Source: Euprymna scolopes
Lineage: Eukaryota
NCBI GenBank assembly: GCA_053919585.1
Contig: CM132790.1
Strand: one strand, 5' to 3'
Length of the DNA stretch: 64,000 bases
The notes beneath the pieces are model-generated. The model was not told where the DNA came from and searched no databases. It was given only the letters and a program-made list of their open reading frames with translations. Shown here in pieces: positions 5,162 to 61,857 of this stretch (within the stretch, counting starts at the first letter, position 1; each line of letters opens with the position of its first letter). The position numbers were made by a program, and so were the translations under genes.

Positions 5162-5366
5162 TAGGAACAAAGTTTAGTATCTGTTCTGATACTACACTTC
5201 ACTTTTTCTGTCCTTGATCAGGGGAGGAGAAATCCTTCTAAACAGGCAATTTTTATTTTTGTTCCTATCCAGAATGCCCTCTTTTGGGGAGCTGGATTTT
5301 CCCCCACATTAAAAACCGACCTTGTGTCTAACTCTGCCCTCGTTGGGAGGAAAGTAAATAGGAACA
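5162..5366 (+). mobile_element. U2-headed SINE-like element, subfamily B, copy 1 body
   Basis: caaagtttagtatctgttct (U2) followed by the family body ggaggagaaatccttc...aatttttatttttg...gtctaactctgccctcg...taaataggaaca. Confidence 0.85.
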
Positions 5367-5376
5367 TTAGATAACA

Positions 5377-5595
5377 TTCTTGACTTTCGGGTCAAGGTCA
5401 GTGTAGTATCTGTTCTGATGCTACACATCATCTTGTCTGCCTTCTGTTAGTGGAGGAGAAATCCTTCATGATTGAGACAATTTTTATTTTTGTTCCTATC
5501 CAGAGTGCTCCTTTTAGGGGAACTGGATTTTCGCCACATTAAAAACCGAACTTGTATCTAACTCTGTCCTTGTGAGGAAGCAAGCAAATAAAAAC
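5377..5595 (+). mobile_element. U2-headed SINE-like element, subfamily B, copy 2
   Basis: Head ttcttgactttcgggtcaaggtcagtgtagtatctgttct and the same body as copy 1, arranged head-to-tail with copy 1. Confidence 0.85.
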
Positions 5596-6445
5596 TTAAG
5601 TGATGTGGACAATAATATGAGGACTAGGAGGGTTGCTCTTCCCCGAGCATAAATAGGGTTAGCTGGTTTGAGTAACCTTTTTATTAAACCATAAGTTTAA
5701 TCTAGTATCCCCAAACTAACTGCAGAGATGTATTCCCCACCTTCTCAAAACCCTAAAATTTCTATTAGACAACTTCATTTATTATGAACTTTTAAAAGTT
5801 GAAGACAAGTCAATATTACATGTGATAGAAGCTGCCATCTTAGATTCTAATAATTTCTGATGTTTCAATATTGGCCTGTTTTTTATGTTGTTCACTGGAC
5901 TAAATACAAGAAAATGCAATGCATTTATTTCTCTCTCTCTTGTAATAAAGTTATTTTGCTATTTTCAGTAGAACCCGTCATTGATTTGCAAAGCTAAAGA
6001 TTTAAAAAAAATATGAAGTTTCTAATTTATCATTGAACTTTACATCTTTAACTTTTGAAAGAGTCTAATTTAAGTTTTAGTAGTTCAAAATCCATTAACT
6101 GCTTCAAATAAATTTAAAAAATGATTGTACATACGTCTCATGGATATTTCAATTCTTTTTACTCGGATAGCAAATAATTTAACTGTGTTTCAATCTAAAG
6201 CAATTCTCACCCAAAAGATAGTTTCTCTAAGTGGATAAAAATAACTTACAGTTTAAATATTTTATGAATAATCTTGGCAAATTTGGGCATACTTTATTGG
6301 TTTTGAAAATATAGTTTTTTTTTTTACCAATTGACATAAAATTTAATCATAGAATATTATTATAATCTTCAAAAAGCCTGCAAATTTTTCATGTTTCATG
6401 CCATAGAACCAAAGATATGAGCATTTCAATATTCAATTTGACTAC

Positions 6446-6495
<50 letters not shown>

Positions 6496-6627
6496 GCAAA
6501 TAGTTAATAAACATGTTAAAAAACACTTTGAAAAAGAGTTATTTATTATTTAATCTGAAAAGGAAACACTTAATAAATGGATAGTCCTTAATCCACATAG
6601 TTTTGAAGAAATACTTTCCTATATATA

Positions 6628-7738
6628 TACTCATGAGCAAAAAAATAATGGGCCAAAAGTGAAAGAATGAATAAATCGATTTTTCAATATTTTTTCATGA
6701 ATTTTTGTTCATTTTAACTGAAAATTTCTATTTTGCAGATCATTATTATTATAGCATATAATAATAAGTGGAAACATTAATCCTAAAAATGGTAAGACCG
6801 CATCTTGAACTGAATTGCAGAATTAAGGCAGTCCAAAATGACTTACAAGCAGATTTTTGATATTTTAAGAAAAGAAAGTGAAAACATCTCTTTCTGTAGT
6901 GAAGTGAATTGGGCAAAGGTTCGAAGTTGAATCTGGTTGCCCTAGAGCATTCACTTTGAAGGACGACTACAGGCTTAAATTAACTGTTTTGAAGGATTGA
7001 AAGAAAACTTATGTTGACCATAGCAAAGAATTCAAAACAGAGACTGGAAATTCTCTTTGTAGATATACAATCTCTAGACGAATGAAAGAAATGGGATTTT
7101 CTTCTTAAAGGTGTGCAAAGAAGCCATTTTTATCTAAGAACGTCAATGATAGAAAGAGATTTTTCTCATTATGACAAGAAAGATACAGACTGGTTCAGAA
7201 ATGTTTTCTGGTCAGATGAATCAAGATTTTGTCTTGTTAGTGATGCTCCCAAACGGTGCATTCAAAGAACTGGAGAAAGATTTTCACCAAGTTGCATAAA
7301 AATGACAGTTAAACACCGGAATGGAGAGATAATAGTATGGGGAACTTTTACTGCAGCAGCAGTTGGGGAACTTATTAGATGTGAGAAGTCAATCAATGCA
7401 AAGGAATACATTCGAATATTAGAAACAGGACTGTTACCAAGTATCCAGAAGCTGGGAATATCTCAGAACATTATTTTTCAACATAATAATGCCCCTGCAC
7501 ACATTGCTAAAGTCACAAAAAATGGTTTTCTGATAATTCAATTAATGTGATATTTTGGCCAGGTCAAAGCCCCGATTTAAACCCAATCGAGAATATTTGG
7601 TCCATAATATCTTGTGCATTGGATGGAAGAACTTTTTCGAACAATGACAGACTGTGGGAGCTGTGCAAAGCAAATGGAATAGATATTGTAGTGATAATTT
7701 CAATTGTTTACATGCGTTAAAGTGGTTATCAAGTAATT
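6628..7738 (+). mobile_element. Decayed Tc1-family transposon (DD34E-type transposase pseudogene)
   Basis: VFWSDESRF, VKHRNGEIIVWG, FQHNNAPAH, then after a frameshift WPGQSPDLNPIENIW. Probable left TIR follows a TA run; no right TIR found. Confidence 0.9.
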
Positions 7739-9074
7739 AACTAATTTATTGAAAAAAGAAACATTCCAAGAAAAATTCAATTTGCTTCAAATTCATATAA
7801 CATTTCCATTTCTTTTTCTTATAGAAAACTTGTTGCTACTATGTGACTTGATAAGCGGTTATATTCTATTTGCCTTTCAATTGAATTCTAGTTAAATGAG
7901 AACCAAATAAATGGATCATAAATCACTTTTTCGTCTTTTTATTTTCTTTAGTTAAAATTCAATAAAATAAAATTTATTTTTAAATCATGTTATTGAAAAG
8001 CAACTCAAAATTGTTTCTTTTAACAATAAGTATGTTTTAATAACTTGGTCTTAAAATATTTTCTTATAAGTCTGCTTGAAGAACAATCAAATAAGATCTC
8101 AAATGTAAAACGAGATACATGATTTTACCGATTTATTTTACTCAATTAAACCAAGTTTTTCAATCGATTGCTGGCATCTTTTGTTGTGTAGACAAAATCA
8201 TGAGTAATTCGCAATCGTTTCATTATTAATAATTTGCAATTATGTTAGATATGAAATGTCTTTGTGTCTATGACTTAACACGATCATCATAGTAATGAGA
8301 AAGATATGATTTATTTTTCCATTGCAATTTTTGTTTTTATTTTTTCACGAGTTTCTAGTTGCCAGTTTTTCTTAATTTTATATGGACTATTTTTGATTCT
8401 CCTTTTATTCAATACTTTCTGCACACAAGTGTTGTTTAGCAGATTGGAATTTTGTTTGTGTAGAAAAATGAGTGACAAAATGATACATCTTGAAAAATAG
8501 ATCTGAAATCCTAACAATATCAACACAATAATGGAACCATTTTACAACCATTCTCAAAGTTCTACACAATGTAAAAATGTTTTCTGAGTCAGCATTTAGA
8601 CAATCAATTTTGGACAAAATAATGATTTGTGTCAGCACATGAACAGAAGTAAGAAAAGGTTATCTTTTATATACAATGAGAAACACTAGCACTAACATTG
8701 GTAAACTCTAGAATGTTTATGGAGGAAAGGTGATAATTTTATGATTAGAAAAAACTTAATGGACACTAAACAAAAAGATGATAGAACTTCTGTCCACCTT
8801 CATATAATGTTCAAGTCTACAAACGCTTAATTTCTAACCATCAATGTTATTACTTTTTCTACTTTTTTCTTTTTTTTTATGACATTGTATCAATAGCATC
8901 TCTTCCTCTGTACATTTAAACTGCATTTCTCTTTTGCTGACCCTCATATTTAATAGAGTTGTGTCCTTGTCTTCTTGCGTGTTAGATTTAACTAATATGT
9001 TGCAGGCCATATACATCTGACAAACTATTACAATGATAAATCGTTTCATTTAACGAATATCTTCCAGATTTTAT

Positions 9075-9352
9075 GTTTCTGGACATGACCTTGAACTATA
9101 TCCGAGGGTGAGGCTCATGCTTGTGGGCTTTGGGGAGTGTGGAGCCACTCTTTAATTGCCATTGCTCCCAGGTCCACTCTGACCCAGAGTTGTAGTAACT
9201 GTTAGGGTCCCAATTATGGGTTAAATAGAAACCGACTTGAAAAAAAACATTCTATTAAATAAACTTTTTCTTCAAAATCACCGGATTCGGCATTAAATAA
9301 CCTGAAAAGTGTTGATATGCCGTAAAACAAAAACAATTAACCAATTAATTAA
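9075..9352 (+). mobile_element. SINE-type interspersed repeat with 12-bp TSD
   Basis: Direct repeat tccagattttat at 9063-9074 and 9353-9364. Body ccaggtccactctgaccc...gttagggtccc and tail gatatgccgtaaaacaaaaac resemble, from memory, an abundant octopod SINE. Confidence 0.8.
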
Positions 9353-10501
9353 TCCAGATTTTATTATTAGGAAAACAAATAAAAACAATAGAAATGGTAT
9401 AAGGAATCATCTTGCAGACTTAGATACTCGAGTATTTGATATGACTGCTTGGTTTTTCTTGGTCAGTGGTTAAAACTTTCCGAGAAAGAACAATTTATCA
9501 AATGTTAAGATCTCTCCTGAAAAGGAAAGTTTGTTTAAAGCTGCAGCAGAGTTGTAGAGGTGGTAGAATTTGGAATTCAAGGGCTGAAATCATGAAAGAG
9601 AGAGAAAGTAAGTTCAAGCCAACTGAGGTAGATACTGCATTTTGGTCTTTAATCTTTTGCTTGAGATTTTAAATGGTTAATGCTTCCATGATTATCTTCT
9701 GATCCCGCAACAGACATAGGGCTGTCATCTCAAAATAGATGATAATCCATAGTATTTAAGAGTCTAAAACATCTTTTTATGTGTTTGGGCTAGAGTTTCT
9801 TTTCTGATTGGCTGTGCTCGGATACTTTGAATGTTTTATTAACTGAAATAAAACATAGATGGATAACTGGAGAAAGAATTGAGTTTATTTTTGTTACATG
9901 CGTTAGGTATGTTACAATGGTCACTTCAAGTTAAGTCTCCAGTCAACCAAATGTGCAGAATGTGACAACATTAAATTCTTCTTGCCATGTGGGCGTAGTT
10001 TCTTAAACTGCATACGGCATATGTATTCTTTCAAGTTAACAAAGTCAGAATCTTAGTTTATAAGTAATATAATAAACATGCGGTTATTATTTTCAAATTA
10101 TCTTTTTGTTTTTAAAGTGAATATTTTGCGATTATCATTTAACAAAAATTACATATGATATTAATACTGATACTACAACAATATATATATAACTGAAACT
10201 TCATTATTCAGCATATCTAGATAAGTATACTCATTTTGATACAATGAGATGCAATAATAGTGCTGCAGAGCCATAAAAAGGGAAAACATTTTAATTTATT
10301 TTATTTATAAATTTTAAATTATACAAGAATCGAAATGGTAATATGGGGCTTAACACTTAGAGCAGAATTGCACAATAATTCCTAGTAAACTTTAGAAGTA
10401 GTTGAAAATTTATCAATTCCGATCAATGAGCATTTGTGAACCCTCACGATGTCACTCACAAAATTGCATAATACAAAATATATACAAGTATAAAAAATGA
10501 A

Positions 10502-10908
10502 TCTGATATAATATAAGAAGACATGGGTTCTTCATTCAATCTTCGGTAGAAAAAAAAACAAAAAACAAAACATTCAGTCGGGCCATTCATCATGGGCCAA
10601 GTCCAGGGGAAGAGTTAGAAGAAATTATTTCTTCAATTCTTAGTGGTAAAAGTTCGAAAACCACTGAAACTAGATAAAATAATCGACGACTGATTTCTTT
10701 TTCTTAGTTTCTATTAAATTTAGGCCGTCGCAAAAGTTTGCGCATGAATTAGAGAAGTAGTCCAGGAATAGGGAGTGACGTGTTAAAAAAAAAAAAAAAA
10801 GGAGAGAAACAGACAGACAGACAGAGTAGTTTTAAGATGATGATGTTACACACTTTTTCATTTACTCCATTTTCCGGTGTCCTAGGCAACGACGGGTAAC
10901 CCTGCTAA
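10502..10908 (+). mobile_element. Non-autonomous Helitron remnant
   Basis: a|tc start with an AT-rich leader; 3' end ggcaacgacgggtaaccctgctaa|t resembles the Helitron terminus at 32474 (CTAG decayed to CTAA). Confidence 0.55.
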
Positions 10909-11245
10909 TCATTAATAAATGAAAATGACCAGAAATAATATTATCTCACTTAATAAAATAAAAAAATAATAAGAGAAACTATTCATTAAACAGTTAAACT
11001 TTGTGAAAATGGAAGCTTTGTTATATAGCTTTCAGCCTCCAATTCGATTCTGTGTACGTTGATGCTGCCTATTCTTTTTCATCCAAATAAATACACATTT
11101 CTTTGTTTAGATTGGGGTTCTTACACTATCAGTTTTCTATCCCCCCTTCTCTTTCTATGCTAACAAATAACATTACTTTGAAACCACAATTTTTTCTCTT
11201 TCAAAAACAAAATTGAAACTTATTTAATGTGATTCTTTGAAAGAA

Positions 11246-11295
<50 letters not shown>

Positions 11296-38479: not shown

Positions 38480-39010
38480 TTTTGTCCAATAATACTAACA
38501 GCAGAATGAATTGCATGCATCTGCAGTATTGAATGATATTCTTTCTTTCACATTATGCCTTATGCATTATTCTACAAGGTCTTCAGCTATCTCTCCTTTA
38601 AAGCATCCCCATACCATTACAGATCCACCTTCATGAACCAATGCAATTTTCACTTATTCATTCAGAATAAATTAGTCTGAAAAAAACTTTTTGCTTTTAA
38701 ACATTTCAAATTTTGATTTATCTGTCCATAATATTTTTTTTTTTTAATCATCTAAAGTCTATTCCTTTTGCTGTCCTATCCAGTGTAGTTGTTTCAACTT
38801 ATTCTCCTTTAATAGTGGTTTCTTAACCGCTACACAGCCTTTAAGCCAGTAAAATGAAGTCGTTTCTTAACAGATACTGCATGTTGCCGAGTAGATTTAA
38901 TTTCAATTGTTAATTCTGGAATGGTTTTTCTTACTAGATATGATCAAGTGCCTATCCTTTAGAACAGATGCTACTCTGGGTCTACCAGATCTTTTTCTGT
39001 CAAAGTCGTT
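38480..39010 (-). mobile_element. Decayed Tc1 transposase fragment
   Basis: Minus strand RKRSGRPR...KDRHLI, FFSD and HEGGSVMVWGCF. Confidence 0.8.
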
Positions 39011-39049
39011 GAAGGCAATAATGCATGCTATTTTCATATGCATCATATA

Positions 39050-41894: not shown

Positions 41895-41896
<2 letters not shown>

Positions 41897-41943
<47 letters not shown>
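41897..41943. repeat. (AC)n microsatellite
   Basis: Perfect dinucleotide run. Confidence 0.98.
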
Positions 41944-41945
<2 letters not shown>

Positions 41946-42646: not shown

Positions 42647-42730
42647 CATTTTAATGAATATACATTTTAATGAATATACATTTTAATGAATATACATTTT
42701 AATGAATATACATTTTAATGAATATACATT
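42647..42730. repeat. 16-bp minisatellite, about 5 copies
   Basis: (cattttaatgaatata)x5 followed by catt. Confidence 0.97.
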
Positions 42731-44984: not shown

Positions 44985-45349
44985 GATATATATATAAATT
45001 GACCTTATCTGTCTGTGTGAGAAACGGTCTACCCAACTACTCTGTCAATTTTTGATTTACAGGCTTGAAACTTGGTATATAGGAAATTTGGACCTATGGG
45101 ACAAATCCAATTTGGTTTTTAGCCGGTAAAAATAGCTGAAAAAAAACTTGAACTTGGCAGGCATAAATCGACTAAATGTGTACCTTCTAAGTATGTGCAA
45201 ATATACATTTATACAATAAAGTCGGTTAATATTTATAAGTTCTGATATGCATCTGTTGTTAGTACAGATGGTTATGATTAAAGCTATATTTTGGTTTCGA
45301 TTCTAGCTGATGGCACCCAAGTCATATTCTTTTTAACTTTTGAAATCAT

Positions 45350-45386
<37 letters not shown>

Positions 45387-45564
45387 GTGCAATATAATAG
45401 ATAAAGAATTGGCTTTAAAAATACAAAATCTGCATGAATTAAAATATAATTTTTAAGTATATTTTATGGCCAGGCAATGTCGAGGGGTGGGACAATATAA
45501 TAATCAATAGAGAATTGGCTCTATAATAATAAGTTTGAAATCTGCATAAATTAAAATATACTAG
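44985..45564 (+). mobile_element. Non-autonomous Helitron remnant (same family as 49940-53034)
   Basis: Shares gcacccaagtcatat and aaatctgca...aattaaaatata blocks with 49940-50130 (reverse strand); ends in a-ctag-t. Confidence 0.55.
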
Positions 45565-45627
45565 TTATTTATAAATTTAGGAGTAAGAACAGAAGTTCTT
45601 CAGTTTTCAAGAACAAATGTTTTTGCT

Positions 45628-46380
45628 AATTTATTATAGAAAAGGAATTTTTTGTGTGTAAGTTTGTTCCCGATGGACTCAAATGGCTGGGTCAATTTTT
45701 ATGAAATTTTACATGAAGGTACCTTATGTGCCTAGCAGTGTTCGTAGATAGGTTTTATATCGGAATGTCTTCGATAAGTATCGATAATCAAATGAAAGAA
45801 GGAACAGGCAATTTTGATCACAGTTAACACCTTACACAGCCTAACCTCACATGTGCATTTGAGAGGTTTTCTGACGCATAAAATCAACAGTAGGTTCTTT
45901 AATATGATAGGGGCATGTTTGAAATGAATGTTTCTGTTTAAAGCACAATTTCACAATATTTGACTTTTTCATTTTATACTTAAATCCAAGCCATGATCAC
46001 TGCACAACCAGACATAAAATCAACAGTAGGTTCTGTGCACTCGAAATGAATGTTTCTGTTTAGAGCACAATTGATACATTATACTTGACTTTTGCATTTT
46101 AAACATTGTGAAACCATTGTATATAAAAATAATTTTATAAAATCAACAGTAGGTTCTCTACAGTGCAATGTAAACTACAATATATTTTGGACTGTCATTG
46201 CGAAAAGCATGTGAAACTTTCTCTCGGTGCACCACGATGAGTCCCCAATTAGAGAAGGCAATCAATCGATTTGATTGAAAAACGGTTGATTTCACGGATT
46301 TCGATGACAATAAAAATATGTGCGTGTAAAACATTTGTTGATCATCATTCAATAGCAGCAACGTCGAGTCACTCTTCTAA
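45628..46380 (+). mobile_element. Non-autonomous Helitron-like element with internal tandem repeat
   Basis: Helitron-like leader, three copies of ataaaatcaacagtaggttct (45878, 46014, 46136) and a decayed 3' end gcaacgtcgagtcactcttctaa|t. Confidence 0.5.
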
Positions 46381-49300
46381 TATTATATGTAAGATGATAC
46401 ATGCCTACATTTGCTCTATTTGTTAGGAAATAATAAAAAATAAATTGATTACAAATAATTGTAACTCACAATTTTGTTTATTAAATTTATCTTGTATTTT
46501 TTTGGACTTTTGTTTTAAGAAAATTGTTAAATATAGTTTTTTTTCCTTTCCTATTTGGTACAAGCAAATGCGAACTTGTATTTGGTTGGTAAGGAAATTG
46601 CTGCATCCTGCATGTATAATTAGCTGAAATAACCTAGTTAAGAGATTATCAAACTGAAAATCCAAATGTGCCGGTTTCAATAAAGGCTCTCAGCAACCAT
46701 ACCCCATCCCATATTTTTTTTAAGTGTTGAAAATCTATTATTTAATACTATCTTTACCTCCCCAGCATTATCTAAGGACTTCATTCCTTTGCCTGGATAT
46801 TGTCGTTTATATTATGCTAATTTCTAATTTCTTTAATTTCTTATCTTATATTTTTAGAAAGATAATTCAATGAAAAATTGTATGCATTAAAATAAAATCG
46901 GTTTGGTATCTTAGAAAATGTGGACATTTAAGTTGCATTTTTTTTTCTCCAATAAAATTATAAGAAACTCAGAAGTACATGTTAGTTTTATTTTAATTTT
47001 TCTTTTTCAATATGACTTGTAAAAAAAATTGTTTTTCAGTTCTAAAATTCAGTTTATACTTCAATGAAATCTGTACAAGGAATGATAAAATATCGAATGT
47101 TCATGAAAACAATCCTGACAATTTTATGCAAAAGGTTGTGTTTTAACAAGTGAAATGGTTGCATCTATTTCTAGCAAGTTCTAATTTTAGAATAGAAGCG
47201 GCTTTATTTTCCATTTTAGTCAATAGTGTCATGTCCACTGAAAGTTTAATTACTTGAGCAAAATGAAAGGTAATAACACATTGCAACACGTCAGTATTTG
47301 TGTCTCTGCATTTAAGCAGTGAGGAGTCACTGGTTGAATGACGCATGTGCGCACATACAATTGAACGGGAGGTGACACTAATTCTTAAGTTAGGCCAGAG
47401 CAACATTCCTATGAAATCACTTAATAATTGGTCACCGTATCTTCGTAAGAGAGCAGGAAACCTCACTCTCCCTGCTGTTCATAAAAAATGACGACACGCT
47501 TTTCGTGGTTTCTGCCCTTTTGACATTACATTCTAGCACGTAAAGAAAGTAATTTTTTTGAAATTTGATAGGATTTGTATGATTAAAAGTTTCGTTTTAT
47601 ACTTTTTTTTCTATCAAGTGTCTTTAATCCGGGATGAATTAATAATGCTATATTAATTTTGGAGCATTCAAATGAAGAGCAAATTATGCCAAGATGTTCA
47701 AACCAATGTTACTCTCATATGCCTGCTTAATATTGACATTATCAGTAAAAGCTATGAAAAGACGTTTTCATTATTTTAAGTTCGACATGCTTTTGTTAAT
47801 TACTTTTTTCTCATTAAACTATGAATGAATCAGTTTTGTATATTCAGTAATTAGAAATTAGATAAAACTTATAGAAACAGCAATATTTTCATCTAATTTC
47901 CAGAATACTTGTTTTTTAAAAATCCTATTTTATGTTCATATTTGAACTAGTTTTATTTTAATTTTTCTGACATTTTGCTTATTTTCTGTTATGTAGAAAA
48001 TGCTACCCTCCTCCAGGCATTCTCTTAATTGGGTATAAAAATAACTGTTGACCATTCCTCTTCCGAAAGGAGGCGGTCATTTCTGAGAGGGTATAATCTC
48101 CTGAAACACAACCTATAAATTATTATTGTAATTTTCTCAAGAACATTTTAAACAGAATTAATAAAACTAAAATGATAATGCTTTTTCTTTCAATGTCGGA
48201 TTCAAAAGAATTTAGTAAAAGTCATATAATTCTTATCTGATAATTGAGTTTATGGAACTACTTGTATTTTTTTTTATCTATCAGAACTTTAAAACATTAA
48301 TACATAAACATAGATAATTACTTTTTAAGTTGATAGCCAAATCATAATTAAACGTTTCCTTTTGCAAACTTGTTAGGTAAACACATTAAACAAATTGAGT
48401 GACTACTACATTGTTATATTCCAAATTTTTTATTTCAATCTTTTATTTATTTTTTACTTTTCAGGATGTTTGAAATAATTCTTAAATTCAAACTATGGAA
48501 CAAAGTATATAGACAATTTTCTAATGCATTTTTAGTATTGGGGGTCAATTTAAATATCAATTTCCAAAATTAAAACTGAACCTATTGATGGCAGTGTGCT
48601 TTATTTGACATCATTCATTTAGTATATAAAAGTTATAGGTCATAATATCGATGATGGTTATTCATGATTATGGTATGGAGGTGGATCATGTTTTTTGTTG
48701 ACTAATCCTTTGTTTCCTGTAATAAGTTTCAAGTAAAAAAAACAAAACAAAAACTATAAAATTGTGACAATTAGCCGCAATTTCCAAGAAATCTTTGGCT
48801 TAGTGGCATGTCCACCTATTTTCTTTTGTCTCAATGAAGACCTAGTGTTTGTGTGAGGAGGAGGGAGGGTTCTTATGTGCTGTAGAGAGGTAATTTTTTT
48901 TAAACTTTATCAGATAAACATAGGACTTGAAGGTAGCATTTATCCCAAGTTTCACTGTGCTGAATTTTTGTACGCTTAAAAAAACCTTGGACAGTAAAAT
49001 CCAGCTAGAACTGATAATTTGTCATTTTTTAAAGTATATTTTTGTACAAAATCTGATTAAAATGGCTTTCATTCAGTATGGTTTCTTTTCTTTTTTTTTT
49101 TTATTCTCTCCTCGTCCCACCCATATAAAATATACCAAGTTTTATAAAATTACAAATAATTGTGACCGAAATTAATTGATAACTATTAATTGATAATATT
49201 TCTGTGGTTTGCTTTTATGCAACTCTTGCTTCGCTATCGACTCACCATTTGGTCACCTTTACAAACTGGATACCGTTCTCGAGATTGAAAGGAGGCAAAC

Positions 49301-50151
49301 TGAGTGTATATGTTCACATAAAGTTCTGACTAAAGAGTATTATGACCATATCATTCATTTTCACGATGATGGCAACTATGTTAACAACATCCTAAAATAT
49401 AATGAATTTGAAAAAACGAAAAACTTTCATTGCATGACAAATAAGGATCAAACACACAAAGTGTATATTGCTATATTTATGAGTGGGGGAAATGCTCAAT
49501 ATTTGATAGAGCATATATAGATTTTAGTTTGAAGAGTTTAAACATGGCCTCAGTAGCAAACTGGTGACCCAGTTTCTTATAAATCAATAACCAATGACAT
49601 TCAAGTCACCATGTTCTGTTGATTTCATGTCTTATAAGTGTATATATAATAATTATATTAAACATTTTTAAGTTTTTAGTCGTTGCAACTGTTTTATTTT
49701 TTCTTTCCTTTTTCTTACCTGTCTCTTCTCTTTCTCTCACATCTTATTTTTCATTCAAAAGAAAGTTGCCATTTTGTAGTACTTTAGAAATGGTCTTAAA
49801 AAAATTATGTAAATTTCCACAGGCGATGCATTCATATGTAATATATTGATGTTGGCATTCTGTAGATGTTCAGCATAAATGGAGTCGCTCTAACATTATT
49901 GTAGCTATTTCGTTAAAACTACAAAAGTATTAATCTAAGCTAGCAGAGACGCCTGGCGTAGCCTGGTCGTAAAGTACGCTTACATATATTTTAATTTTTG
50001 CAGATTTCATATATATATTATATAATGTTCTATCGATTTTGGTATATTATAAAGTTGCAATTAAAAAAAAAAATATATATATATATATCCATATGACTTG
50101 GGTGCAGTAGCTTGAATTGAAAGTGAAACTAAAACTTATGAAATATATATA

Positions 50152-51890
50152 CAGTGCCACACAAAAGTATTGGATACACATTTTTCTTCATAAATTTAAT
50201 TAGGGTTCAAGATTTTACCTAAAATTTGGTCAGTATATTCCTATTACTATTCTAAATTATATTTGGAGTAGTAATTACAAAATTAAAGTTTAGAAAGTTT
50301 ATATTTAAGGAAAAATATGAATTAACAAATGTAAAAGTATTTGGATACACTTTTAAAAAATTCTTTTTCTGAAATAAATTTAAATTACCTTTGTTTATTG
50401 TGTTGCAATAATGCAAACGAGTAATCACTGACCAATCAGAGAGCTTTATATTAAAATAAATTTATAAAATTCTTCCAGTTTGTGCTCACTCCTTCAAAGT
50501 CAACCAGTTTATTTATAAAAATGCCTAAAACTGTCAATAGTTGTCAATAGACATTCATCAAAAAATCATTGATAAGCATAAAGAAGGAAAAGGGTATCGA
50601 ATAATATCAAGGGAACTTAATCTACCACTTAGTAGAGTTGGAAATGTTATTAAAAAGTTTAAAAACCCGGGTGAAGCTGTTGTAAATCTTCGAAGATGTG
50701 GTCGGTCAAGGAAATTAAACGAAAAAAATCAAGGTGGGTAAGCAGAAAGGTACACAGAACCCCTTTTCTTACTCGTGGTGAAATTCAAACCGACCTCAGA
50801 GAAGCTGGGATTAATGTGAGCAAGGATACAATCAGTAGTTCTAAATTGCGCAGGTTCTGTATCAAGCTCCCCAAGAAAAGTTCCATTATTGAAGCTTAAA
50901 CATGTCAGATCATGTTTGAATTATGTTAAAACATATGAATTTTGGAACAAGTTAATCTGGTCAGACAAAACGAAAATCGAAATCTTTGGAAGAAACACAA
51001 CACATGTATGGCGTAAAAATGACATCGCCTATAACAAAAAGAATACTATTCCTATGGTAAAGTTTGGAGGTGGTTCGATTATAGTATGGGGGTGTTTTTC
51101 ATCCAAAGGTACTGGTGAACTAGAAATCATCAATGGTAAAATGAATGGACGTATGTACAGGGAGATTTTGTAGAAAAACATCCAGAAATCTACTGATTTG
51201 TTGGAACATAATAGCAATTTTATGTTTCAGCAGGACAATGATCCCAAGCATATTGCCAAACTAACCAAAGAATGGCTTAGAAATAATGGAATTGACGTTC
51301 TTATTTGGCCCAGTCAGTCTCCAGACCTCAACCACATTAAAAATTTGTGGAAAATATTGCAGAGGAATCTACAAAATATTCAACAACTAGGACAGTTCTG
51401 CAAAGAATGGCACAAAATACCTGCAAAAAACGTGTGCAACTATAGAAAGCGATTGGAAGCTGTTGAATGCAATACCTTTATTGCATTCAAATGCTTCCGA
51501 TCGCAACCAAATATTAAATCAATGTATCCAATATTTTTGCGTTAGTTGATTTATAGTTTTCCTTTAATATAAACCTTCTAAACTTTGATTTTGTAATTAC
51601 TACCCCAAATATTAGATTACTCGTTTGCATTATTGCAACACGCTAAGCAAAAGTCATTTAAATTTATTTCAGAAAAAGAATTTTTTAAAAGTGTATCCAA
51701 TACTTTTGCGTTTGTTAATTCATATTTTTCTTAAATATAAACTTTCTAAACTTTGATTTTGTAATTACTACTCCAAATATAATTTAGAATAGTAATAGGA
51801 ATATACTGACCAAATTTTAGGTAAAATCTTGAACCCTAATTAAAGTTATGAAGAAAAATGTAATGTATCCAATACTTTTGCGTGGCACTG
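50152..51890 (+). mobile_element. Full-length Tc1-family IR/DR transposon with decayed transposase (about 50521-51518)
   Basis: TIRs of about 275 bp (50152-50426 and 51615-51890) starting CAGTG, each with two aaaagtattggatac direct repeats; motifs [50 protein letters not shown]; frameshifts and a stop. Confidence 0.97.
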
Positions 51891-51975
51891 TGTGTGTGTA
51901 TATATATATGAACCTGAATTCCTTCAGCAATAACCGAAACCAAAAATTATGAAGAATTCTTGGTAAAATTATTCA

Positions 51976-52935
51976 GTGCAAGTCTATAAATGGTCCACAA
52001 GTAATCTTTTTTACTATAAAAATCTGAAAAAAATCTTTATAATGTACGTACTTGTCACTGCATGAAAATGTCATATTCCAAAAATAACGTAAATCGATCA
52101 AGTAGTTTTGTTTTTTATTTAAGAAAAGCAAATATTATTAGACATTTTATCGAAGAAAAACTTAACGCCATCTTGTTTTTGAATGATACACTGCTAGCGA
52201 CAACTCTTGGGAGTGTTTGGAATATAAGATCGGCAAGGGGCAGACAATTGACTTTCCACACTATAGAAAAAAAAAACTTGGAAAATTAAGACATAAGTTT
52301 TTGAGGAATTTGAAAACGAAAATAACGTTTAAAATTCCAGCATACGAGTAGTTTCCAAGATATGAAGAATTTTATGTAAATTGAGCACCCACACGTTGAC
52401 GCTCCTCCAACAAAAATTCGTCAAATGTGTATTTCAGCGGTGTAAATTAAAGTTTTACACTATTGGTGGCCATAAAGTGGGTGATCATTATACCTTAAAT
52501 TATTATAGAAAAGTGATCCCCCACTTTCTTTAAACTAACATTTCTTCATATCTTGGAAACTACTCGTTTGCTGGAATTTTAGACGTTATTTTCGTTTTCA
52601 AATTCCTCAAAAACTTATGTCTTAATTTTCCAAGATTTTTTTTTTTTTATAGTGTGGAAAGTTGATTGTCTGCCCCTTGCCGATCTTATATTCCAAACAC
52701 TCCCAATAGGTGTCGCTAGCAGTGTATCATTCAAAAATAAGATGGCGTTAAGTTTTTCTTCGATAAAATGTCTAATATTTGCTTTTCTTAAATAAAAAAC
52801 AAAACTACTTGATCGATTTACGTTATTTTTGGAATATGACATTTTCATGCAGTGACAAGTACGTACATTATAAAGATGTTTTTCAGATTTTTATAGTAAA
52901 AAAGATTACTTGTGGACCATTTATAGACTTGCACC
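51976..52935. mobile_element. Foldback/MULE-like non-autonomous element
   Basis: Near-perfect inverted arms of about 395 bp around a spacer of about 170 bp; TSD aattattca at 51967-51975 and 52936-52944. Confidence 0.92.
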
Positions 52936-54390
52936 AATTATTCATTACAAGAAATGGAAGTCCATAACAATTAAACGACTTGGATGTAAGTGTGACACAG
53001 AAAATAAATAACAAACACGCTATATTAATATAGATATTTGAATATTCAAATTTTTGATATGGAATTTATTGTGGGAATGTACAATATGAAGGGGTATAAA
53101 GTGTACTCAGGACGTCAAAATTATTGACCTCATGACATATTTGCCTCTTTTAGTTAATTTGGACAAGTTACTCTTATCAGTTTATTTTCGTTATATGGCT
53201 TCATTTATCCTTTATATTACAGTTTTGGCTCCATACTGTCTCTCCTACCCATCCTGATAACTATCACAAAAAGTCACTTATTTTTACATCCTAAGTATAT
53301 GAAGCCCCTTGAGAACAAAATTAATTCTTAATTCATCCATCCACTATTTTATTTAGAATTTTAATATATAGGTTTATACAGAAAATATAGTTTTTCGTTT
53401 GGTATAAGATGTTTTTACATATTTTGAATTTTATGCATCAAAATGGTTTTATTTTTTACTAAGTCTTTAAATTCTTTAAAATTTGTAATTTTTCTTTTAT
53501 GAAGTCAAAACGAAATAGAGAGGATGTAAATTAGCTTACACAAATCCACATGCATATTAATATTTCGAAATGTTTAACAACCGATGTGAGAAAATAGAAC
53601 AAGTAGGTGTACCCATCCAAGAACTGAAACTCCTGTTAATAAGTGAAATGCGGTCAGAACCCAAAATACTTAATAACATTCAAAATATACTGAAAAACTA
53701 ATTTATGGATTGAGCAAATGTTTTACTTTTGTCCCTCCATATTAAAAGTCTCTACAATTTTTTTTTTTTTATTTCATTAGTATAATACTGAAAAACTCTT
53801 CAGTTGAGTGTTTCCTAACTCCTTGAAGAGAAAAAAAAAATAGGTTATATGCGAACTGGAAAAATGTAATTCGTTGGGCCACCCATTCAGCTCAAGCATA
53901 AAAAAGTGGGTTTGCATAGCCAGTTAAATATTAAGAAAAGACAAAGTCTTAAATTCTGCTTGCTATATATCTTCCTCCTCTCACTTTCCTTTCCATTAAA
54001 TATTTTTTGCTATTTACGATGTTATTCCTTTTTATAATAGATTAACCCAATCTTATTTTCTGTATTACATTCAACTGTTTTCAAGTGTATGCTATCACAA
54101 AAGCGAGAGTGAAGAAATGATATAGGGAGGAGGAGTTCACACCACTCACAGTGAAAGAAGAGGGTAATAGAAGCCTAATAAAAAACGATGAATGGTCAAT
54201 TAATTGCAAATTAACACTGAGTAGAACAGTTCAAATGAAGTTTTTCAAACATAACATTTATTGAACAAAGAATATTTTAGCATGTATTTTGTGTGATTAA
54301 AATGACCGCTAGCAAGTTTTCATAACCAGTGGTAAGGATGCTGTAATCGTGGTGTTTCGACCCTCAGTGGAATCAGCCAAGTTGATGAGC

Positions 54391-55099
54391 TAGGTGTATC
54401 AGAATTTTTGTAGGAATTTTTGACACCCCTAACACGAAACTGCGAATAAAATATAAAAAGAACTCGTAATTTCTCTTTTAAAAGTGGGTTGTTTATTTTC
54501 TTTATGGATTAATTATACTTCCAAAATAAACTATTAAAGTTGTATAAAAAGTAATAGAAATATATTTTTTTATTTTTTAAAAAACTAATGAAATTAATTG
54601 AATTTTATGAGTTCAGTATTTTTCAATTTTTAAACTTTAAAAATCTATCAAAATTTTTCTATTGATTCAATTTTTACGATATTTTCAGGGTCAATGTGAA
54701 ATTTTATGCTCTTTCCAATAAACCGAATATAATATTTTAGACAAACGTTTTTTTTTTAATTCACGCCCCCCCCCCATTTTGAAATGTCTATTAAAAAGCA
54801 AATAATTAATTTACTCACCAAAGTTTTATATATCACAAATTGAAGATAAAAGATCAATAAATAATATATTCAAATTTAAAACAGTGTTTTTTAGAAATTT
54901 ACCTGCAAAGCCCGAAGTTTAAAACCTTTTATTTATTTTTTTTTAAGACCACGTTGTTTTTTTACGTGAAACCTTGGTCCTTGCCCCTTTAATTGAAAAA
55001 AAAAATTAGTGTTTGAATGACATTTTTCGAGTAGAAAAGAGTAGTGGAAAGACAGGGGGTCGAATTATTCAATATTTTTCAAAGTTTTTGACACACCTA
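54391..55099. mobile_element. Non-autonomous DNA transposon with short TIRs and 9-bp TSD
   Basis: taggtgtatcagaatttt / aaagtttttgacacaccta termini; ttgatgagc at 54382-54390 and 55100-55108. Confidence 0.8.
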
Positions 55100-56940
55100 T
55101 TGATGAGCTGTAAAGTAATGAAACCTGCGTTTTTATTTTATTTTTTTTTCATTACCATCTTCCCCGGTAATAGAATGCATGTCCTAAGTCTAATAGATGT
55201 TATGATTTGGAAAATTTCTTCAAATATATACATTTATTTTTCTGGGAAGTACAGGAGTGAGGACTACTACAGGGTTGTGTATATTCATCTTTTTAGGACA
55301 ATCTTCATAAAATAGTAAATCTTTTTACCTTCCTATTTCTAATAGTCTAAATCTAGTTAATTGTCAGGAATACATAGTTATAAAAATACTCTATCATTTT
55401 TTTTTTTTTTTTTTTTTTGTAAAAATTTATACAAAAGAATAGATATTGCATAATATATAAGACGATTTTTCAGTTTTGATTTGTCAGTTTCTTCACTAAT
55501 TACACTTTTACAATCCTTCTTCCAAATTTTCTGCAAAAAATTATTCATTGAAATTGTTAAAAAAAAGTAATATTTTTTTTGCATAAAAAATCTGACACAT
55601 GAATTTAATAAAAATTAATCTCCAATGTTTGCTTTTTTTTTTTTTTTTTAATGTAGATTTGTTTTCGTTTATTATTAAATTTGATCATGTCTTTATTTTG
55701 GAAATCTTATTGAAAGCTTTTTAAACCATTTAAAAACAATATTTCAATATTCATAAATGCACCCGACAATGACTTCATAAATAAATAAGACCCAATAACA
55801 TTAAATAGTAATGATTGCTGTCTAATGTCATGTTCCCTTTTTAATAATATTCTTTAATTATAAAAATAAATATTCACATGAACTTTTAAGGTTTATATAC
55901 AGTTACAAAAGTATTCTAATTTTTTTAGATAGCTATTATTTCGTTATTTATAATTTTCTATGGATCTATATTTTATAATTTTTAAAATACCCCTATTAAA
56001 TTGCTATAAATGTCTTTATTTTTATAATAGAAAGAGATGGTTTCATTTGCTTGCAAGAAACGTGCCAAATTTATTCTTTTTGAAAAACAAAACTAACAAA
56101 TCTTGTTAAGGAAACAATGAAAAATAAACATTTAATGACTTATTTTTTCATTAGAAAAAGTAAATAATAAATATCCAAAATATGTTTATATTTCAGCATA
56201 GAATATTTTCTGAAAGAAATTAAAACAATTATTGATGGGAGGTGCAAGACTTTTCATTAAAAAAAAAATTACTTTGTGTTTCCGTGCATAAACACTTTTG
56301 GTTTTTCTTTTGCAAAAGGGTGTTTTTTTTTTGTTTTTTTTTTCATATTTCTTGAGTCAAACATATTCATGTTTTAAATTTTTTATTACACCTCTCCCCT
56401 AAAAAACTAACATTCTTCTTAGAAATCTAACTTCAACAAAATTTAACGCAAAATTGAATTCAAAATATATTGGGCGACACTTTCACTATAGATAAAACCG
56501 TTCCTACCCCCTCCTAAAAAAATTAAATTGATGCCATTTTAATCAATTATGCACCCCGAAAAACCTGAAGGAAACAGATATTTTTTAATTTACTCAGTAT
56601 TTATCTCCCATAGCAAAACAATTATTTGGTTAACTGACCTAAAACCTAGAATGGCCCGGAAACTGGGGATCACCTTGTTAAATTTCATAGGATGAGAATT
56701 GCAAGCCTCCGAAAATTAGTAGGAGGTTATGGCCCCCTAGGTTCGTAAGTTCATCTCGATTTCTTTATTTTAGTTTTTCTTGCCATTAATCGTCCACATC
56801 TCTGGATATGACTGACATCACATATCATGTGAAATATATTTTTATTTCTTTTAGACAACTTATGCAGATATATTTCAAAGAGGCAGATGAAAGAAGTTTA
56901 CTTCAACTTTGCAACATTTGTGTTTATCGGAAGTGAACAG

Positions 56941-57029
<89 letters not shown>

Positions 57030-59621
57030 CTTAAACTGGGTTATTTCGGCTTTTGTCAAAGTGAAGTATGGTTCTGGTTCTGTTCCATTTTCTCAAAATT
57101 TATCTCCTTATCCCAGAAAGAGGCGGTATCACTAGTCATCGAAGGCACCCTGGTTGATAAATGTTGACAGATCCAATCATAAAATTTTTTGCACTTGTTC
57201 AGAATGACCATTGTTTAGGATTCTGGAATACTAACTATAAAACTGACGCCATGTCTAACGTTGCTGTTACTTTTTTTGGGGGGTGAGGTGGGGTAAATGT
57301 ATGCAAATAGGAAAAAAATCTACTTGTATGACAACATGCCGGGATACGTTTGATGTTGAATTTATATTATAAATTATAAACAGTATTCTTTATTTACAAT
57401 AATAGAAAATTAATGTATATAAAGTAGTGAATAAAAAATATTAAAAAAAATTTGCCAGTTAAATTTCGTGGGATTTTTTTTTATTTTTGTTTATGAGTCA
57501 CATAACATGTAACTAGTACATGCTTACTTTTTAAACCTCTCTTAACTTCCCTACAATGTTCATTTCTAGAGAATGTTTGATAATTTTCTAGTTTAGAGGT
57601 TTTATGTTTAGATATGTTATTGGGATTAAAAAACTCAATTATAGTTATTGGAAATGTTACGTTATTTTAAAAAAAATTATTTTTTCACAAAAAAAAAAAT
57701 TCATGTTAAGAAATTTCAGTAAGAAGAATGATCATTACAGTAAGAGTAGATAAATATTTAAAAATAAACTTTAAAAGTAAGAAACCCGGTTTAAAACAAA
57801 TGGTTTTCCATTTATTTACAATTTTCACTAATATGCTAATTATTACTTTAATATTTCATTATCCAATTAATTTAAAAACCTTACATCTTGCCATTTTAAA
57901 TAAATTGTTCCAAAAATAAATAAAGAACTAATAATTATTTTACAAAAATAAAACCCTATTAAAGGAGCGTGTCGGGTTATTTTTAAAGTCTGAACATCTC
58001 ATTAATAACTTGTGGCTTTCTGTAATTCAGGTGTGACTCCCTCCTCTTCAAAAGTATGTCAAAATAAGGATTTAAAGAATTAGAACAGAATATTTTTTAT
58101 TCATTATGAAATCATTTATCACTATTTTAAGAATGTAATTGTTGAAAATGAAATAAATGAATCAGAGAAGGTTGTATTTTAACAGTTCACCTCCATAAAA
58201 AATAACTGAGTTACACAAATTGTAATAGTATCATATCAGAACTGAAATAATGGCTCATTTAAATAAATTACATAAAAGCCGAAACGGGGATGAGGTACAA
58301 GAAAAAATAAAATGGTCGTACCACTAAACTCAAATTTTAACCTGTAAAATTTAGATCTTTCTTGTATAAGGACATTTTCTAACGACAAAATAACTAGTAT
58401 CACTAATTTTCAATCTTCTCATAATATTTTTCATCATTCAATTGACAATTTATTTGTTAAATCCTTGTCCCCAAGTGATTGTTAGCCTTAATAAAAAATA
58501 CTTAAATGTGTTTCATGTTATCAAATAATTTATTCAGAAAAGTCTCCAGACGGTACTTTTTTTGTGTGTAACTCTGAAACAACACAAGGTCAATGAAAAT
58601 ACGAAATCTTTTCTTTTTTTTAAGCTGGATCTTAATCTATTTAATTCAATAAATTTCTGTTAGAATAGCGAGACTTTCAGTGAATAATAGTGCCTCTAGT
58701 TGAATTGAAATGTTGCTTCACCAAACCTTTTCCCTTTGTGAATATTTTTCAGCCTCCATTTTTAATATTTAAAAAAAAAAAAAAAATTATAAGTAAACAT
58801 GTCTTTTGTTTCATTGGAGCACGAACACACACCCACACACGCAGGGAGATTAGGAGTTGATTTTTTTTTTTTTTTTTTTTTTTTTTCTAATCTAAAGTTC
58901 AGCACATTTTACCAAACTCAATTGCTTAAATTTTTGAAAAGGTAAAGCTCTGTTTTTAGAATTGATAAAAAGTAAAAGGAAGTAATTTTATGGACTTGAT
59001 GGAATCGAAAGTATCTTGAGTTCAAACAACTTTTGTTTGCATTTCTCAGATTTCGTAAACTTTTTAGTCAGCCCATCTTCCCTTTCATGACTGCTAAAAT
59101 ATGCTGAACTAGTTAGCAGGCGATTTTAAGCTGAACGATATTGATTGCAAAAAATCAACCTTTTGTTTTTGTTTTTTTTGTTTTTTCTTTTGCCATGTTG
59201 ACCTGATCGACACAGGCGAAAGAAGAATGTGTGTCATATTTCTGTAAATATTTGCACCTCTTGTAGTTTACAAGTTGTGTAGATAGATGAATATTACTTT
59301 TTAAATTTTTTTCTTAGAATATTGAGTAGTAATAAATCTGGTGTTTCTACTATTATGCTCATATTTCTATTAAGGTTTTTAAAAAATATTTTTTTTTTTT
59401 TTAGCTATTGTCAATTTTGTTTAAAATTGATTATAAAATGAAAAATTAGTTTTAGTCTTCCATTTGTATCATTTTGATTTATTTTTAGTAACTTGAAATG
59501 TGAGTTTTGCCTCATTAAATCAAATGCTTTATAGCAATTTTTATCATGTATTGGGCATTATATATATATATATATATGTATATATATTATATATATATAT
59601 ATATATATTATATATATTATA

Positions 59622-59856
59622 TATAATAAATATTATATACAATCTCTCACATTCTGAAAATCATATATATATATATATATATTATATATAATAAATATTA
59701 TATACAATCTCTCACATTCTGAAAATCATATATATATATATATATATATATAATAAATATTATTATATACAATCTCTCACATTCTGAAAATCATATATAT
59801 ATATATATATATATTATATATAATAAATATTATATACAATCTCTCACATTCTGAAA

Positions 59857-59899
<43 letters not shown>

Positions 59900-59960
59900 A
59901 ATATTATTATATACAATCTCTCACATTCTGAAAATCATATATATATATATATATATATAT
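59622..59960. repeat. Minisatellite: about 40-bp core plus variable (AT)n, 5 copies
   Basis: taataaatattatatacaatctctcacattctgaaaatc-(at)n repeated five times. Confidence 0.95.
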
Positions 59961-61668
59961 AATCTTATGATAAAATGGAAAAGTCTTACTTGCAAGTATA
60001 TGAATGAGACGTGAAAAGCTAGGTAGGTGAGCATATGCATTAAACACAAGTTCCATAATCTGAATGGTATGAGTTCGATCCCTGTACATGGCAGTTGCAT
60101 TTTAACTTTTCAAATAATATTTCACAGAACAATATCCAAGAAACTGGCGATATAAAAATATTTCATTGAAGGCAAATAAATCCTCATATAAAAATGTCTA
60201 TTTTATCAATGCTTACTTGATTTATTAAAAAATGATAGATATCTTTTTTTAATTGTCAATACTAAAATAATTCGTTAAAAAGAAAAAAAGAAATGAAAGT
60301 ACAACTGCATTTAAATAATCCAACTAATTCAGTATTCTTTCATAATTGTTTCTTTTTCCCTTTCTTCTCTCTCTTTCTCACTCTCCCAGCTTAAATGATT
60401 ATCCTTGCTTTGTTCTTGAACTTTACATTTTTATTTATTGTCTGCTTGAGGATTTGATATAGTGACCGGCTTTCAGTTTTTATTCTGTATGAATGTTTCT
60501 CTGGTAATTACTGCTGAGATGGCAGATTTATTGTGTCACTTCCCCATCTTTTATACAAAATCTGAATTGTTTTCTCTACCTTATATTTGGAAACTCTTTA
60601 ACCCTAACTGCTGCAGTTTACTATATTTCGCCTTTTGCTCAACCACAAATGTGGCTTGAGGGTAAGATTAAGATAATTTTCTATTAGACACCCAGAAACT
60701 TGTTTTTGTTTAAGAATGCAATGACCTTGTTATGTTTTCACTAAAAATTAAGCATTCCTTTTTACATTTATTTTTTAGCATTGTATTTTTTTTATATACT
60801 TACAAAAAAAAAAGATTGGATTCATCATTCACAGATAAATCTTTTTTGTGCATAAATTAATTTTGATAAAAAAATATTGCTTTTATTATATTGTTCCAAC
60901 AAACTGTCTTATTGTTGGTATTGTAGTATATTATATAGCTTTCTTCATACATTTATATTTATATATTAACTGTCATTTTGTTTATCGTTTATTAGTTTAA
61001 ATTCAACCTTCAAATGGTGTTCTATTTTTGTTGCATCAAAATAAATTTTTAAAGAATTAGACATTAATTATTTCGGTACTTGTATCAAACAACATTCCAA
61101 ATTGACATTTTTTCGTGATTAAAAATAATTCCTAATAGAAGCATTATTTTGGCTGGTATACTTTTTCATCTATTTAGATTTAGTTTGGTGCCTTCACTTT
61201 TCTTTCTTTATATAACACGCAAACATGCATTTTTTATTCACAATAAAAATATTGTATTAATAAATAAGAAGCAAAAGTAATTAAGATAACGACAACTGTT
61301 ATTTTCTTATAAAAAATAGGTCAGTGTATTGGAAGTATTTATTTTAAGCTTGCTTATGATATTTTCAAGCGTCATAAAAAAAACTCTACAATTGTGATAT
61401 GTTGGAAGAAACGGACACATTTTTGTCACTAAAACAATTCCTAAATTGTATATCCTACAACAGAAGCCTATATTCATCATTTTTTACTTTTTTGCTATAA
61501 AATCATTGTGTACAGTGACCAGGATGTGCACTACAACTCATCATAAGGATAATGTACAGTTGTCATGAAACATGAACTGTTTCATGATGTACGTATGTGT
61601 ACGTGTGACATCAGACGTAACTTTTGGGGAAGCATGAGGAATGCTGTGTCTCGGTAGCCAACAATTGA

Positions 61669-61857
61669 TGTACCTATTTATTATGTCTCCCCACGGGACA
61701 GAGTTAGACACCAGGGTCGTTTTTTTAACGTGGAGAAAAGGTACAAAAATAAAAATTGTCTCAGTCGTGAAGGATTTCTCCTCCACCGAAAGAGAACAAG
61801 AAATAGAAGTGCAGCATCTGAAGAACAGATACTACACTTTGATCTTGACCAAAAGGC
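61669..61857 (-). mobile_element. U2-headed SINE-like element, subfamily A, copy 5
   Basis: Reverse complement reads gccttttggtcaagatcaaagtgtagtatctgttctt (U2) then a body nearly identical to copy 3. Confidence 0.92.

Follow-up and report, generated by a model that had tools for sequence, protein, structure and literature searches.

How does a short, dispersed, non-coding repeat come to begin with the 5' end of U2 small nuclear RNA (snRNA)? The question is raised by a stretch of 64,000 nucleotides (nt) from the mollusc Euprymna scolopes (assembly GCA_053919585.1, contig CM132790.1), called the window below and meaning the whole of the DNA analysed, in which five copies of such a repeat are found. 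On balance, we favour the view that these repeats form a non-coding retroposon superfamily dependent on long interspersed nuclear elements (LINEs), as the non-autonomous partner of LINEs that home into U2 genes, and that they carry both flanks of the LINE target. The U2 head would then probably be a co-transcribed target flank of a U2-homing LINE, and not the promoter-bearing head of a short interspersed nuclear element (SINE).

A U2-headed family in the window and in the genome

The original prediction, made from the letters of the window without database searches, described five U2-headed bodies on both strands, and a BLASTN search of the copies against the window returns exactly these five. 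They are listed here with the sequences that flank or interrupt them; TSD stands for target-site duplication, and a stroke, as in nt 21/22, marks the point between two nucleotides.

3235..3248, plus strand: 5' TSD of B copy 1 (aacttcagataaca), 12/14 letters identical to 5363-5376
3249..3268, plus strand: start of the U2 head (nt 6-25) of B copy 1, its first 20 letters; ttcttggccttctggctagg read directly, colinear with 5162 onward
3269..5161, plus strand: 5'-truncated, putative L1/Tx1-type LINE of the U2-homing family, at U2 nt 21/22 of the SINE head; 4-bp TSD (TAGG)
5162..5362, plus strand: remainder of B copy 1 (U2 nt 22-47, fold-back, body, tail ending gtaaatagg)
5363..5376, plus strand: 3' TSD of copy 1, doubling as 5' flank of copy 2 (aacattagataaca)
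5377..5592, plus strand: B copy 2, full-length head from U2 nt 6; Rfam U2 30 bits
15646..15656, plus strand: 5' TSD of A copy 3 (tacttaagtct), an exact 11-bp repeat with its 3' counterpart at 15836-15846
15657..15835, plus strand: A copy 3, 0.6% from the A consensus, head start near U2 nt 10-17
26703..26890, plus strand: B copy 4, without the B-specific middle hairpin
61673..61859, minus strand: A copy 5, 1.8% from the A consensus, head start near U2 nt 11-13

The 11-bp TSD announced for copy 3 is thus exact. When the U2 branch-point 18-mer is searched with up to 3 mismatches, the window has 6 matches against 0.07 expected, and five of them are the copies. The remaining match, at 38961 (38961-38978), was considered as a sixth copy and rejected as a chance match; a U2-like match at 17404-17439 was likewise rejected as a copy of the family.

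That the 5' head is derived from U2 was confirmed, with 93% identity to host U2 over 43 nt. 'Up to about 45 nt of U2' had been proposed, joined to the body at a fixed point; both the head and the fixed junction stand, and only the length needs correction, since the U2 part extends to nt 47. Full-length heads start with (A)TTCTTGGCC, which corresponds to U2 nt 1-6 onward with a small deletion, and end at nt 47. Host U2 and the SINE head both carry GATCAAAGTG, unlike vertebrate U2, and it is because of this motif in host U2 that vertebrate-type U2 patterns found no match in the genome. With an E-value threshold, Rfam reports U2 at 61736-61866 on the minus strand (31.3 bits, E=1.7e-4) and at 5371-5551 (30 bits), both scores lying below the gathering score of 46 of the U2 model (RF00004); at gathering thresholds, Rfam has no match in the window. 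A search of the copies against Rfam returned U2 only, and no tRNA, 5S or 7SL. The global alignment of Rfam suggested that the remainder of the unit is degenerate U2, a possibility that we rejected, as this remainder has no similarity to U2 nt 48-196.

What had been taken for the start of the body is an anti-U2 fold-back, because the 10-12 nt that follow U2 nt 47 are the reverse complement of the U2 branch-point region (GTGTAGTATCTG). These letters are GATACTACAC in B and CAGATGCTGCAC in A, the reverse complement of U2 GTGTAGTATC(TG), and they pair with the branch-point-recognition region as a hairpin. Of 14 diverse copies, 11-13 retain the seven core pairs of this hairpin, mostly via G-U changes. 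Most of the 14 also retain the fold-back and two hairpins, with a double change at only 1 of 19 pairs in a covariation test, so that conservation of an RNA structure in the family is no more than plausible. The A RNA folds far better than its shuffles (z = -6.5).

The units are 179-216 bp long and non-coding, and contain three internal T runs (T5, T5 and T4). The absence of A/B boxes and of a poly(A) tail, noticed from the start, was upheld, the box search being null even with relaxed patterns. A 25-mer diagnostic of the A/B body, with up to 3 mismatches, has 57,119 matches in the 5.9-Gb genome and 0 for the control, the genome density of the family being a matter of pattern counts. Identity to copy 3 reaches 98-99% in at least 44 other copies, and 34 sampled A copies lie at a mean of 0.7% from their consensus in a sample biased towards the best matches. 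Older A-like copies have 85-92% identity, and B copies 73-82%. Of 30 sampled A loci, 15 have clear TSDs of 9-19 bp, and the sampled copies have no common upstream sequence. These counts agree with the dispersed, TSD-flanked, high-copy retroposon that had been predicted; moreover, the unit is not simply the 3' end of a LINE, since half of the sampled A copies bear TSDs of their own.

The copies end …GTAAATAGG, with the TSD directly after. The 3' flank of A copies starts with T in 29, A in 30, C in 26 and A in 27 of 30 cases, and the TSDs of young A copies nearly always open with TACA; B copies are followed by AACA at this place. The division into two subfamilies proved too narrow: A and B are real, but the monomers fall into at least three types, and dimers and arrays occur as well. 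The third type, C (239 bp, locus L046), has head and fold-back in common with A, and the A and B tails align with its tail; L046 itself is a C+A dimer within a single TSD pair. Counting the C-type units, the total for the superfamily is probably above 100,000 monomers.

A LINE resident in the native U2 array

Native U2 forms a tandem array of 764-bp units (~1,175 exact pattern matches; Rfam 161-179 bits), which spans ~168.867-168.97 Mb of C9 and beyond. It is interrupted at least 4 times by inserts of 7-8 kb, with spacing gaps of 7.9-8.4 kb between regular units. The insert that was examined (L057/L058, G000:C9:168874962-168886374) is ~7 kb long, preceded by U2 nt 1-47 and followed by U2 from nt 22. 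Its foreign sequence ends …AATAAAATAAATAAA, and U2 nt 22 onward comes next, so that U2 nt 22-47 constitutes a 26-bp TSD. The last 210 codons of the insert encode the C-terminus of an ORF2 protein with a zf-RVT domain (E=1.3e-8), for which 130 homologues were found. The zf-RVT domain is typical of ORF2 in L1/Tx1-type LINEs. The insert appears to be such a LINE, the choice between the Tx1 and L1 clades being limited to these 210 codons. Its 3' untranslated region (UTR) contains an internal run of ~75 A.

U2 nt 47 is the last U2 letter both of the SINE head and of the flank upstream of this LINE. In addition, the same LINE family has inserted in two SINE heads, one in the window (3269-5161) and one at locus L017, where the head of a young A copy adjoins, at U2 nt 21/22, a LINE 3' end that has 90% identity to the array copy. 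The tail of the C monomer and the LINE 3' UTR have an exact 17-mer and a C-rich block in common (z 6.2-8.6, 0/1000 shuffles). Finally, the LINE ends …ATAAA and is followed by U2 TAAGATCA, while the SINE B end is …GTAAA followed by TAGGAACA: B units end …GTAAA plus TAGG, then comes AACA, and nt 22-29 of the copy 1 head read TAGGAACA. Because the passage from LINE end to U2 nt 22 is mirrored in this way by the B end with TAGG(AACA), the last four SINE letters (TAGG) look like the start of the downstream U2 flank, nt 22-25.

A copy split by the LINE, and a site apparently used twice

Copy 1 had been described as truncated at its 5' end, with a start at 5162. This was not borne out: head nt 6-25 are found at 3249-3268, cut off by the LINE fragment at 3269-5161. 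The insert, 1.9 kb in length, is preceded by ttcttggccttctggctagg and followed by taggaacaaagtttagtatctg… from 5162, with TAGG duplicated on both sides, and copy 1 as a whole is enclosed by a 14-bp TSD with 12/14 identical letters (3235-3248 versus 5363-5376). By blastn the insert has 69-72% identity to the LINE resident in the native U2 array; by tblastn, homologues of the ORF2 C-terminus of the array LINE cover 3243-4418; and the LINE 3' ends of the array copy and of the window insert align through the U2 junction. Judged from its sequence, copy 1 is a B copy with nothing missing, into whose U2 head a LINE has inserted at nt 21/22. Since the missing head precedes the LINE insert, the label 'truncated' is dropped.

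The sequence between copies 1 and 2 is informative in another respect. The octamer aacttaag, part of the target sequence of copy 1, recurs directly after copy 2 at 5593-5600, and because of this recurrence the arrangement suggests two SINE insertions at one target site. Target-site reuse is likewise found at locus L003, where an A copy stands beside a B copy.

A proposed origin at the homing site

How could U2 sequence have been added to both ends of such a unit? We propose that the origin lies in an L1/Tx1-type LINE family homing into U2 genes. The LINE would nick the bottom strand of U2 at nt 21/22 and the top strand at nt 47/48, so that each insertion would come to lie between U2 1-47 and U2 nt 22 onward. 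A short non-autonomous derivative or partner at the U2 site would have been transcribed with both flanks, and the co-transcript would have become the unit of retrotransposition, taking the U2 head along wherever it inserted. Its RNA would be laid out as U2 nt 1-47, the anti-U2 fold-back of 10-12 nt, a variable middle, a LINE-3'UTR-related tail and TAGG, similar to U2 nt 22-25. A and B would be driven by a subfamily of these LINEs. Spread beyond U2 would have occurred by target-primed reverse transcription with the LINE proteins, producing the TSDs of 9-19 bp, and the U2 heads of the copies would in turn attract new LINE and SINE insertions, resulting in split copies, dimers and head-to-tail arrays.

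Sites would be selected largely where the nicked DNA can pair with the letters that close the RNA, (U/A)ACA. We take such pairing to be the best account of the TACA/AACA rule, because the first letter differs between the two TSD copies at L003 and L023, copy 5 has TACATC on its 3' side only, and units of a head-to-tail array at L018 are separated by TACAA. One may go further and suppose, as a tentative extension that we would not call probable, that both homing-site flanks in the RNA (U2 1-47 in front, letters like U2 22-25(29) behind) serve as guides: the 3' letters would choose the nick and prime on it by pairing, the 5' leader would let the completed cDNA anneal to U2-like DNA, and the fold-back would mask the branch-point-recognition letters.

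Several observations weigh against an origin at the homing site. Full-length heads start (A)TTCTTGG and not ATCGCTTCTCGG. Tails of A and B units compared directly with the LINE 3' UTR give z 0.3-3.0, which is not significant, and the link between tail and LINE passes through one sequenced C-type monomer (L046). Neither the first nor the last 300 nt of the LINE resemble the SINE body; because the body is unlike the first 300 nt, the element is not a simple internal-deletion derivative of the sampled LINE family, which is itself putatively of the Tx1 or L1 clade on the strength of its last 210 codons. Dispersed A copies land at TACA, and not at TAAG, the U2 site of the LINE. A pattern linking the native ATCGCTTCTCGGCC start to the SINE junction, as expected of a master copy, gave 0 matches, and no master copy was found within a U2 gene. 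A LINE sharing the SINE tail had also been sought, by keeping the last 40 nt and allowing a different sequence upstream: the 143 matches were all deleted or truncated SINE copies, with no recurrent LINE.

The RNA data point in the same direction. Two poly(A) RNA-seq runs cover the SINE part 700-1,300-fold in each orientation, equally in both, and 89% of the reads continue into unrelated flanks. Because of these extensions, and because SINE reads have no discrete starts or ends in the two runs, we see the copies as parts of longer transcripts, in either orientation. Poly(A) libraries lose small non-adenylated RNAs, and the null result for unit-length RNA is not decisive there.

Alternative scenarios

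Three other scenarios were considered. The one that survives best, unlikely as we hold it to be, is a template switch of the SINEU type (SINEU being the snRNA-headed SINEs of crocodilians). Reverse transcriptase working on a LINE-related RNA would have jumped to mature U2, copied it from ~nt 47-53 to its 5' end, and produced a single chimera that became the master; the match with the LINE at nt 47 would be due to chance, and the driver LINE would be unrelated to U2 homing. Kojima proposes this route for SINEU (PMC4494074), and chimeric snRNA-LINE retrocopies formed by template switching are described in Buzdin 2002 and Garcia-Perez 2007, as cited in PMC4494074. The genome studied here holds independent U2 chimeras and retropseudogenes as well. 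At L032:1440-1570 (minus strand), U2 nt 1-62 with an intact 5' end are fused to ~70 unrelated letters ending aaataaatactt, within a 13-bp TSD (ccccatcatatat); this chimera looks like a one-off template-switch retrocopy. At L031:1357-1537 (minus strand), a U2 retropseudogene (Rfam 77.5 bits) has lost both of its ends, and a piece of an old B-like SINE lies ~200 bp downstream. Furthermore, if a 2-nt deletion is allowed, the SINE head may reach CAG at U2 nt 51-53, which blurs the boundary at nt 47.

A template switch leaves three facts unexplained, however: the TAGG(AACA) end that mirrors U2 nt 22-29, the likeness of the tail to the 3' UTR of the U2-resident LINE, and the presence of that LINE in SINE heads. 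Switching to capped U2 usually yields an intact U2 5' end, as in L032, and the full-length heads are without it. Template-switch chimeras do resemble the present units in having a U2 5' part, an unrelated 3' part and TSDs; they are nevertheless single events with varied junctions, whereas here one fixed junction is found in tens of thousands of copies. We continue to prefer co-transcription of a homing-site flank.

A second scenario, which we regard as improbable, is that a Keno- or Utopia-like lineage, cutting U2 at GTAGTA/TCTGTTC, drives the family or at least its C-type units. It arises from the joint GGAGCAAATAAATACCA/TCTGTTCT, which has 57,294 matches in the genome against 0 for the control, often spaced 193-209 bp apart, and occurs in 135 RNA reads with an agreement of 0.97. 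The joint falls at the exact nucleotide where Keno and Utopia 3' ends meet U2 (PMC4640811), and could have come about by the repeated entry of a second, unseen lineage into U2 heads. An equally good account is that 13 nt were lost from the 26-nt linker of U2 22-47 (TAAGA…TCTGTTCT) and that one successful dimer then spread the shortened form; the L046 dimer, with its single TSD pair, and locus L008, which has a full-length linker at a different joint, are in keeping with such a loss. No LINE of this lineage was found, and GTAGTA/TCTGTTC is the site neither of the five window copies nor of the array LINE. Insertions at this site in native U2 gave 0 matches with a pattern built on the GATACG variant of a minor locus, the main array (GATAGG) being outside its scope.

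The third scenario, in which the U2 head is a promoter or snRNA-like module and the element is transcribed like an snRNA or RNA polymerase III (Pol III) gene and matured via an Sm-like site, can point to the AAUUUUUAUUUUUG stretch between two hairpins and to the unusually stable A fold, but we give it hardly any credit, since U2 promoters lie upstream of the gene and not in the RNA (as established, and discussed by Kojima, PMC4494074), A/B boxes are absent, T5 runs would stop Pol III, the sampled copies are without common upstream sequence, the reads have no discrete ends, and the body is unlike U2 nt 48-196.

Relation to known elements

The family differs from a classical Pol III SINE in having neither A/B boxes nor a tRNA, 7SL or 5S head. 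It is closer to SINEU. The families SINEU-1/2/3 are also short and non-coding, start with the 5' end of U2 (or U1), and have internal oligo-T and no recognisable Pol III promoter. They likewise show TSDs, many subfamilies and dimers, and a LINE of the L1/Tx1 kind is their proposed driver, some of these LINEs having the same snRNA 5' end; U1/U2 heads resembling those of SINEU occur on some crocodilian Tx1 LINEs (PMC4494074). All SINEU families have a poly(A) tail (PMC4494074), whereas the present family, hosted by a mollusc, has none; its U2 1-47 head is followed by an anti-U2 fold-back, its 3' letters resemble U2 nt 22-25, and its LINE homes into U2, that of SINEU into a Mariner element. By head, size, TSDs and structure, the family is best filed as being of the SINEU kind, the bodies being set beside those of SINEU by description.

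Kojima 2015 detected no snRNA-headed SINEs outside crocodilians (PMC4494074), and our literature search found no mollusc case. The suggestion that the repeats of the window are an independent invertebrate counterpart of SINEU is thus supported.

Keno (Tx1 clade, with an APE endonuclease) and Utopia (with a restriction-like endonuclease) are U2-targeting LINEs, Keno being reported from frogs, fish, lancelet and hydra and not from molluscs (PMC4640811). Common points with the elements described here are U2-flanked insertions, tandem stacking in U2 and, in some families, TSDs of up to 20 bp. In contrast, the LINE found here joins U2 at nt 21/22 with a 26-bp TSD, another site than that of Keno or Utopia, and the SINE family is non-coding and lies mostly outside U2 genes.

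R2 and its short derivatives offer a further parallel, the derivatives being non-autonomous partners of a target-specific LINE that are co-transcribed with the target. Such partners need no promoter of their own, as transcription starts in the target gene, and the target flanks present in their RNA help integration. An argument from R2 co-transcription is cited in PMC4494074. The present unit differs in that it has left the target gene and spread genome-wide, and has kept both target flanks.

How SINEU acquire their heads and are transcribed was left open (PMC4494074). The present family provides a second, independent and much younger case of an snRNA-headed SINE, in an invertebrate, where earlier cases were published from one vertebrate order. 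Here the likely source of the head can be read in the genome, as a LINE living in U2 genes that leaves a 47-letter leader before itself, and the origin of snRNA heads becomes a testable question. If the tentative extension given above, with both flanks as guides, holds, SINEs would in general owe their snRNA heads to the homing sites of target-specific LINEs, as scars, and not to the capture of promoters. Published genomes of decapodiform cephalopods are described as almost devoid of SINEs (PMC13218726, PMC8967140). Pipelines keyed to tRNA, 7SL or 5S heads will file the at least 57,000 (probably >100,000) units as 'unknown', and, on the same tentative reading, the family, being unclassified, would explain some of the 'near absence of SINEs' reported for large mollusc genomes.

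Further observations

The N runs of the window fall within 19625-24853, inside a CT-rich simple repeat (ctctc/cctct-type units, 17595-26349) that holds all its assembly gaps, and at least 1.8 kb from every copy. No copy touches a gap, and because the nearest ones end at 15835 and start at 26703, no statement made here relies on continuity across the gaps. Directly upstream of B copy 4, at 26669-26694, lies a 26-nt piece (cttatttttatttttgtacatttgg) with 95% identity over 20 nt to the T-rich middle of the SINE, which may be a rearranged fragment of another copy.

Outside the window, the head-to-tail array at L018:1293-2262 (G000:C28:19600483-19601440) comprises five A units with a 195-bp period and TACAA between them; unit 1 has the head variant GGCCTTCGGGAC, and the other units have GGCCTTTTGGTC. 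Loci L007 and L010 have the same flanks around an A copy, and L010 is without the upstream TSD copy present in L007. Because the flanks are the same at both loci, the A insertion is carried by a larger repeat or duplication. At four near-identical places (G000:C6:159327, C11:119720841, C19:36709737 and C21:116638761), a B-type SINE tail follows one and the same unrelated AT-rich sequence (…ttacttttagcttaactttatatttcaccattt…); here a truncated B-type tail has been captured by another repeat.

In the poly(A) RNA, an A>G difference at window position 15741 is nearly confined to one read orientation (193/699 versus 2/682 in run 1, 99/734 versus 0/604 in run 2), and position 15704 was noted together with it. 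The difference at 15741 could be RNA editing of SINE-containing transcripts, or could come from one highly expressed variant locus. Lastly, RNA contigs (runs X20 and X23) from a run labelled as a second species contain an A-type SINE with 95-99% identity. The flank that follows position 15835 (aacaatcaaat[a/g]aagatt…) is common to RNA of the first and second species label, which hints at an orthologous expressed A copy across the two labels.

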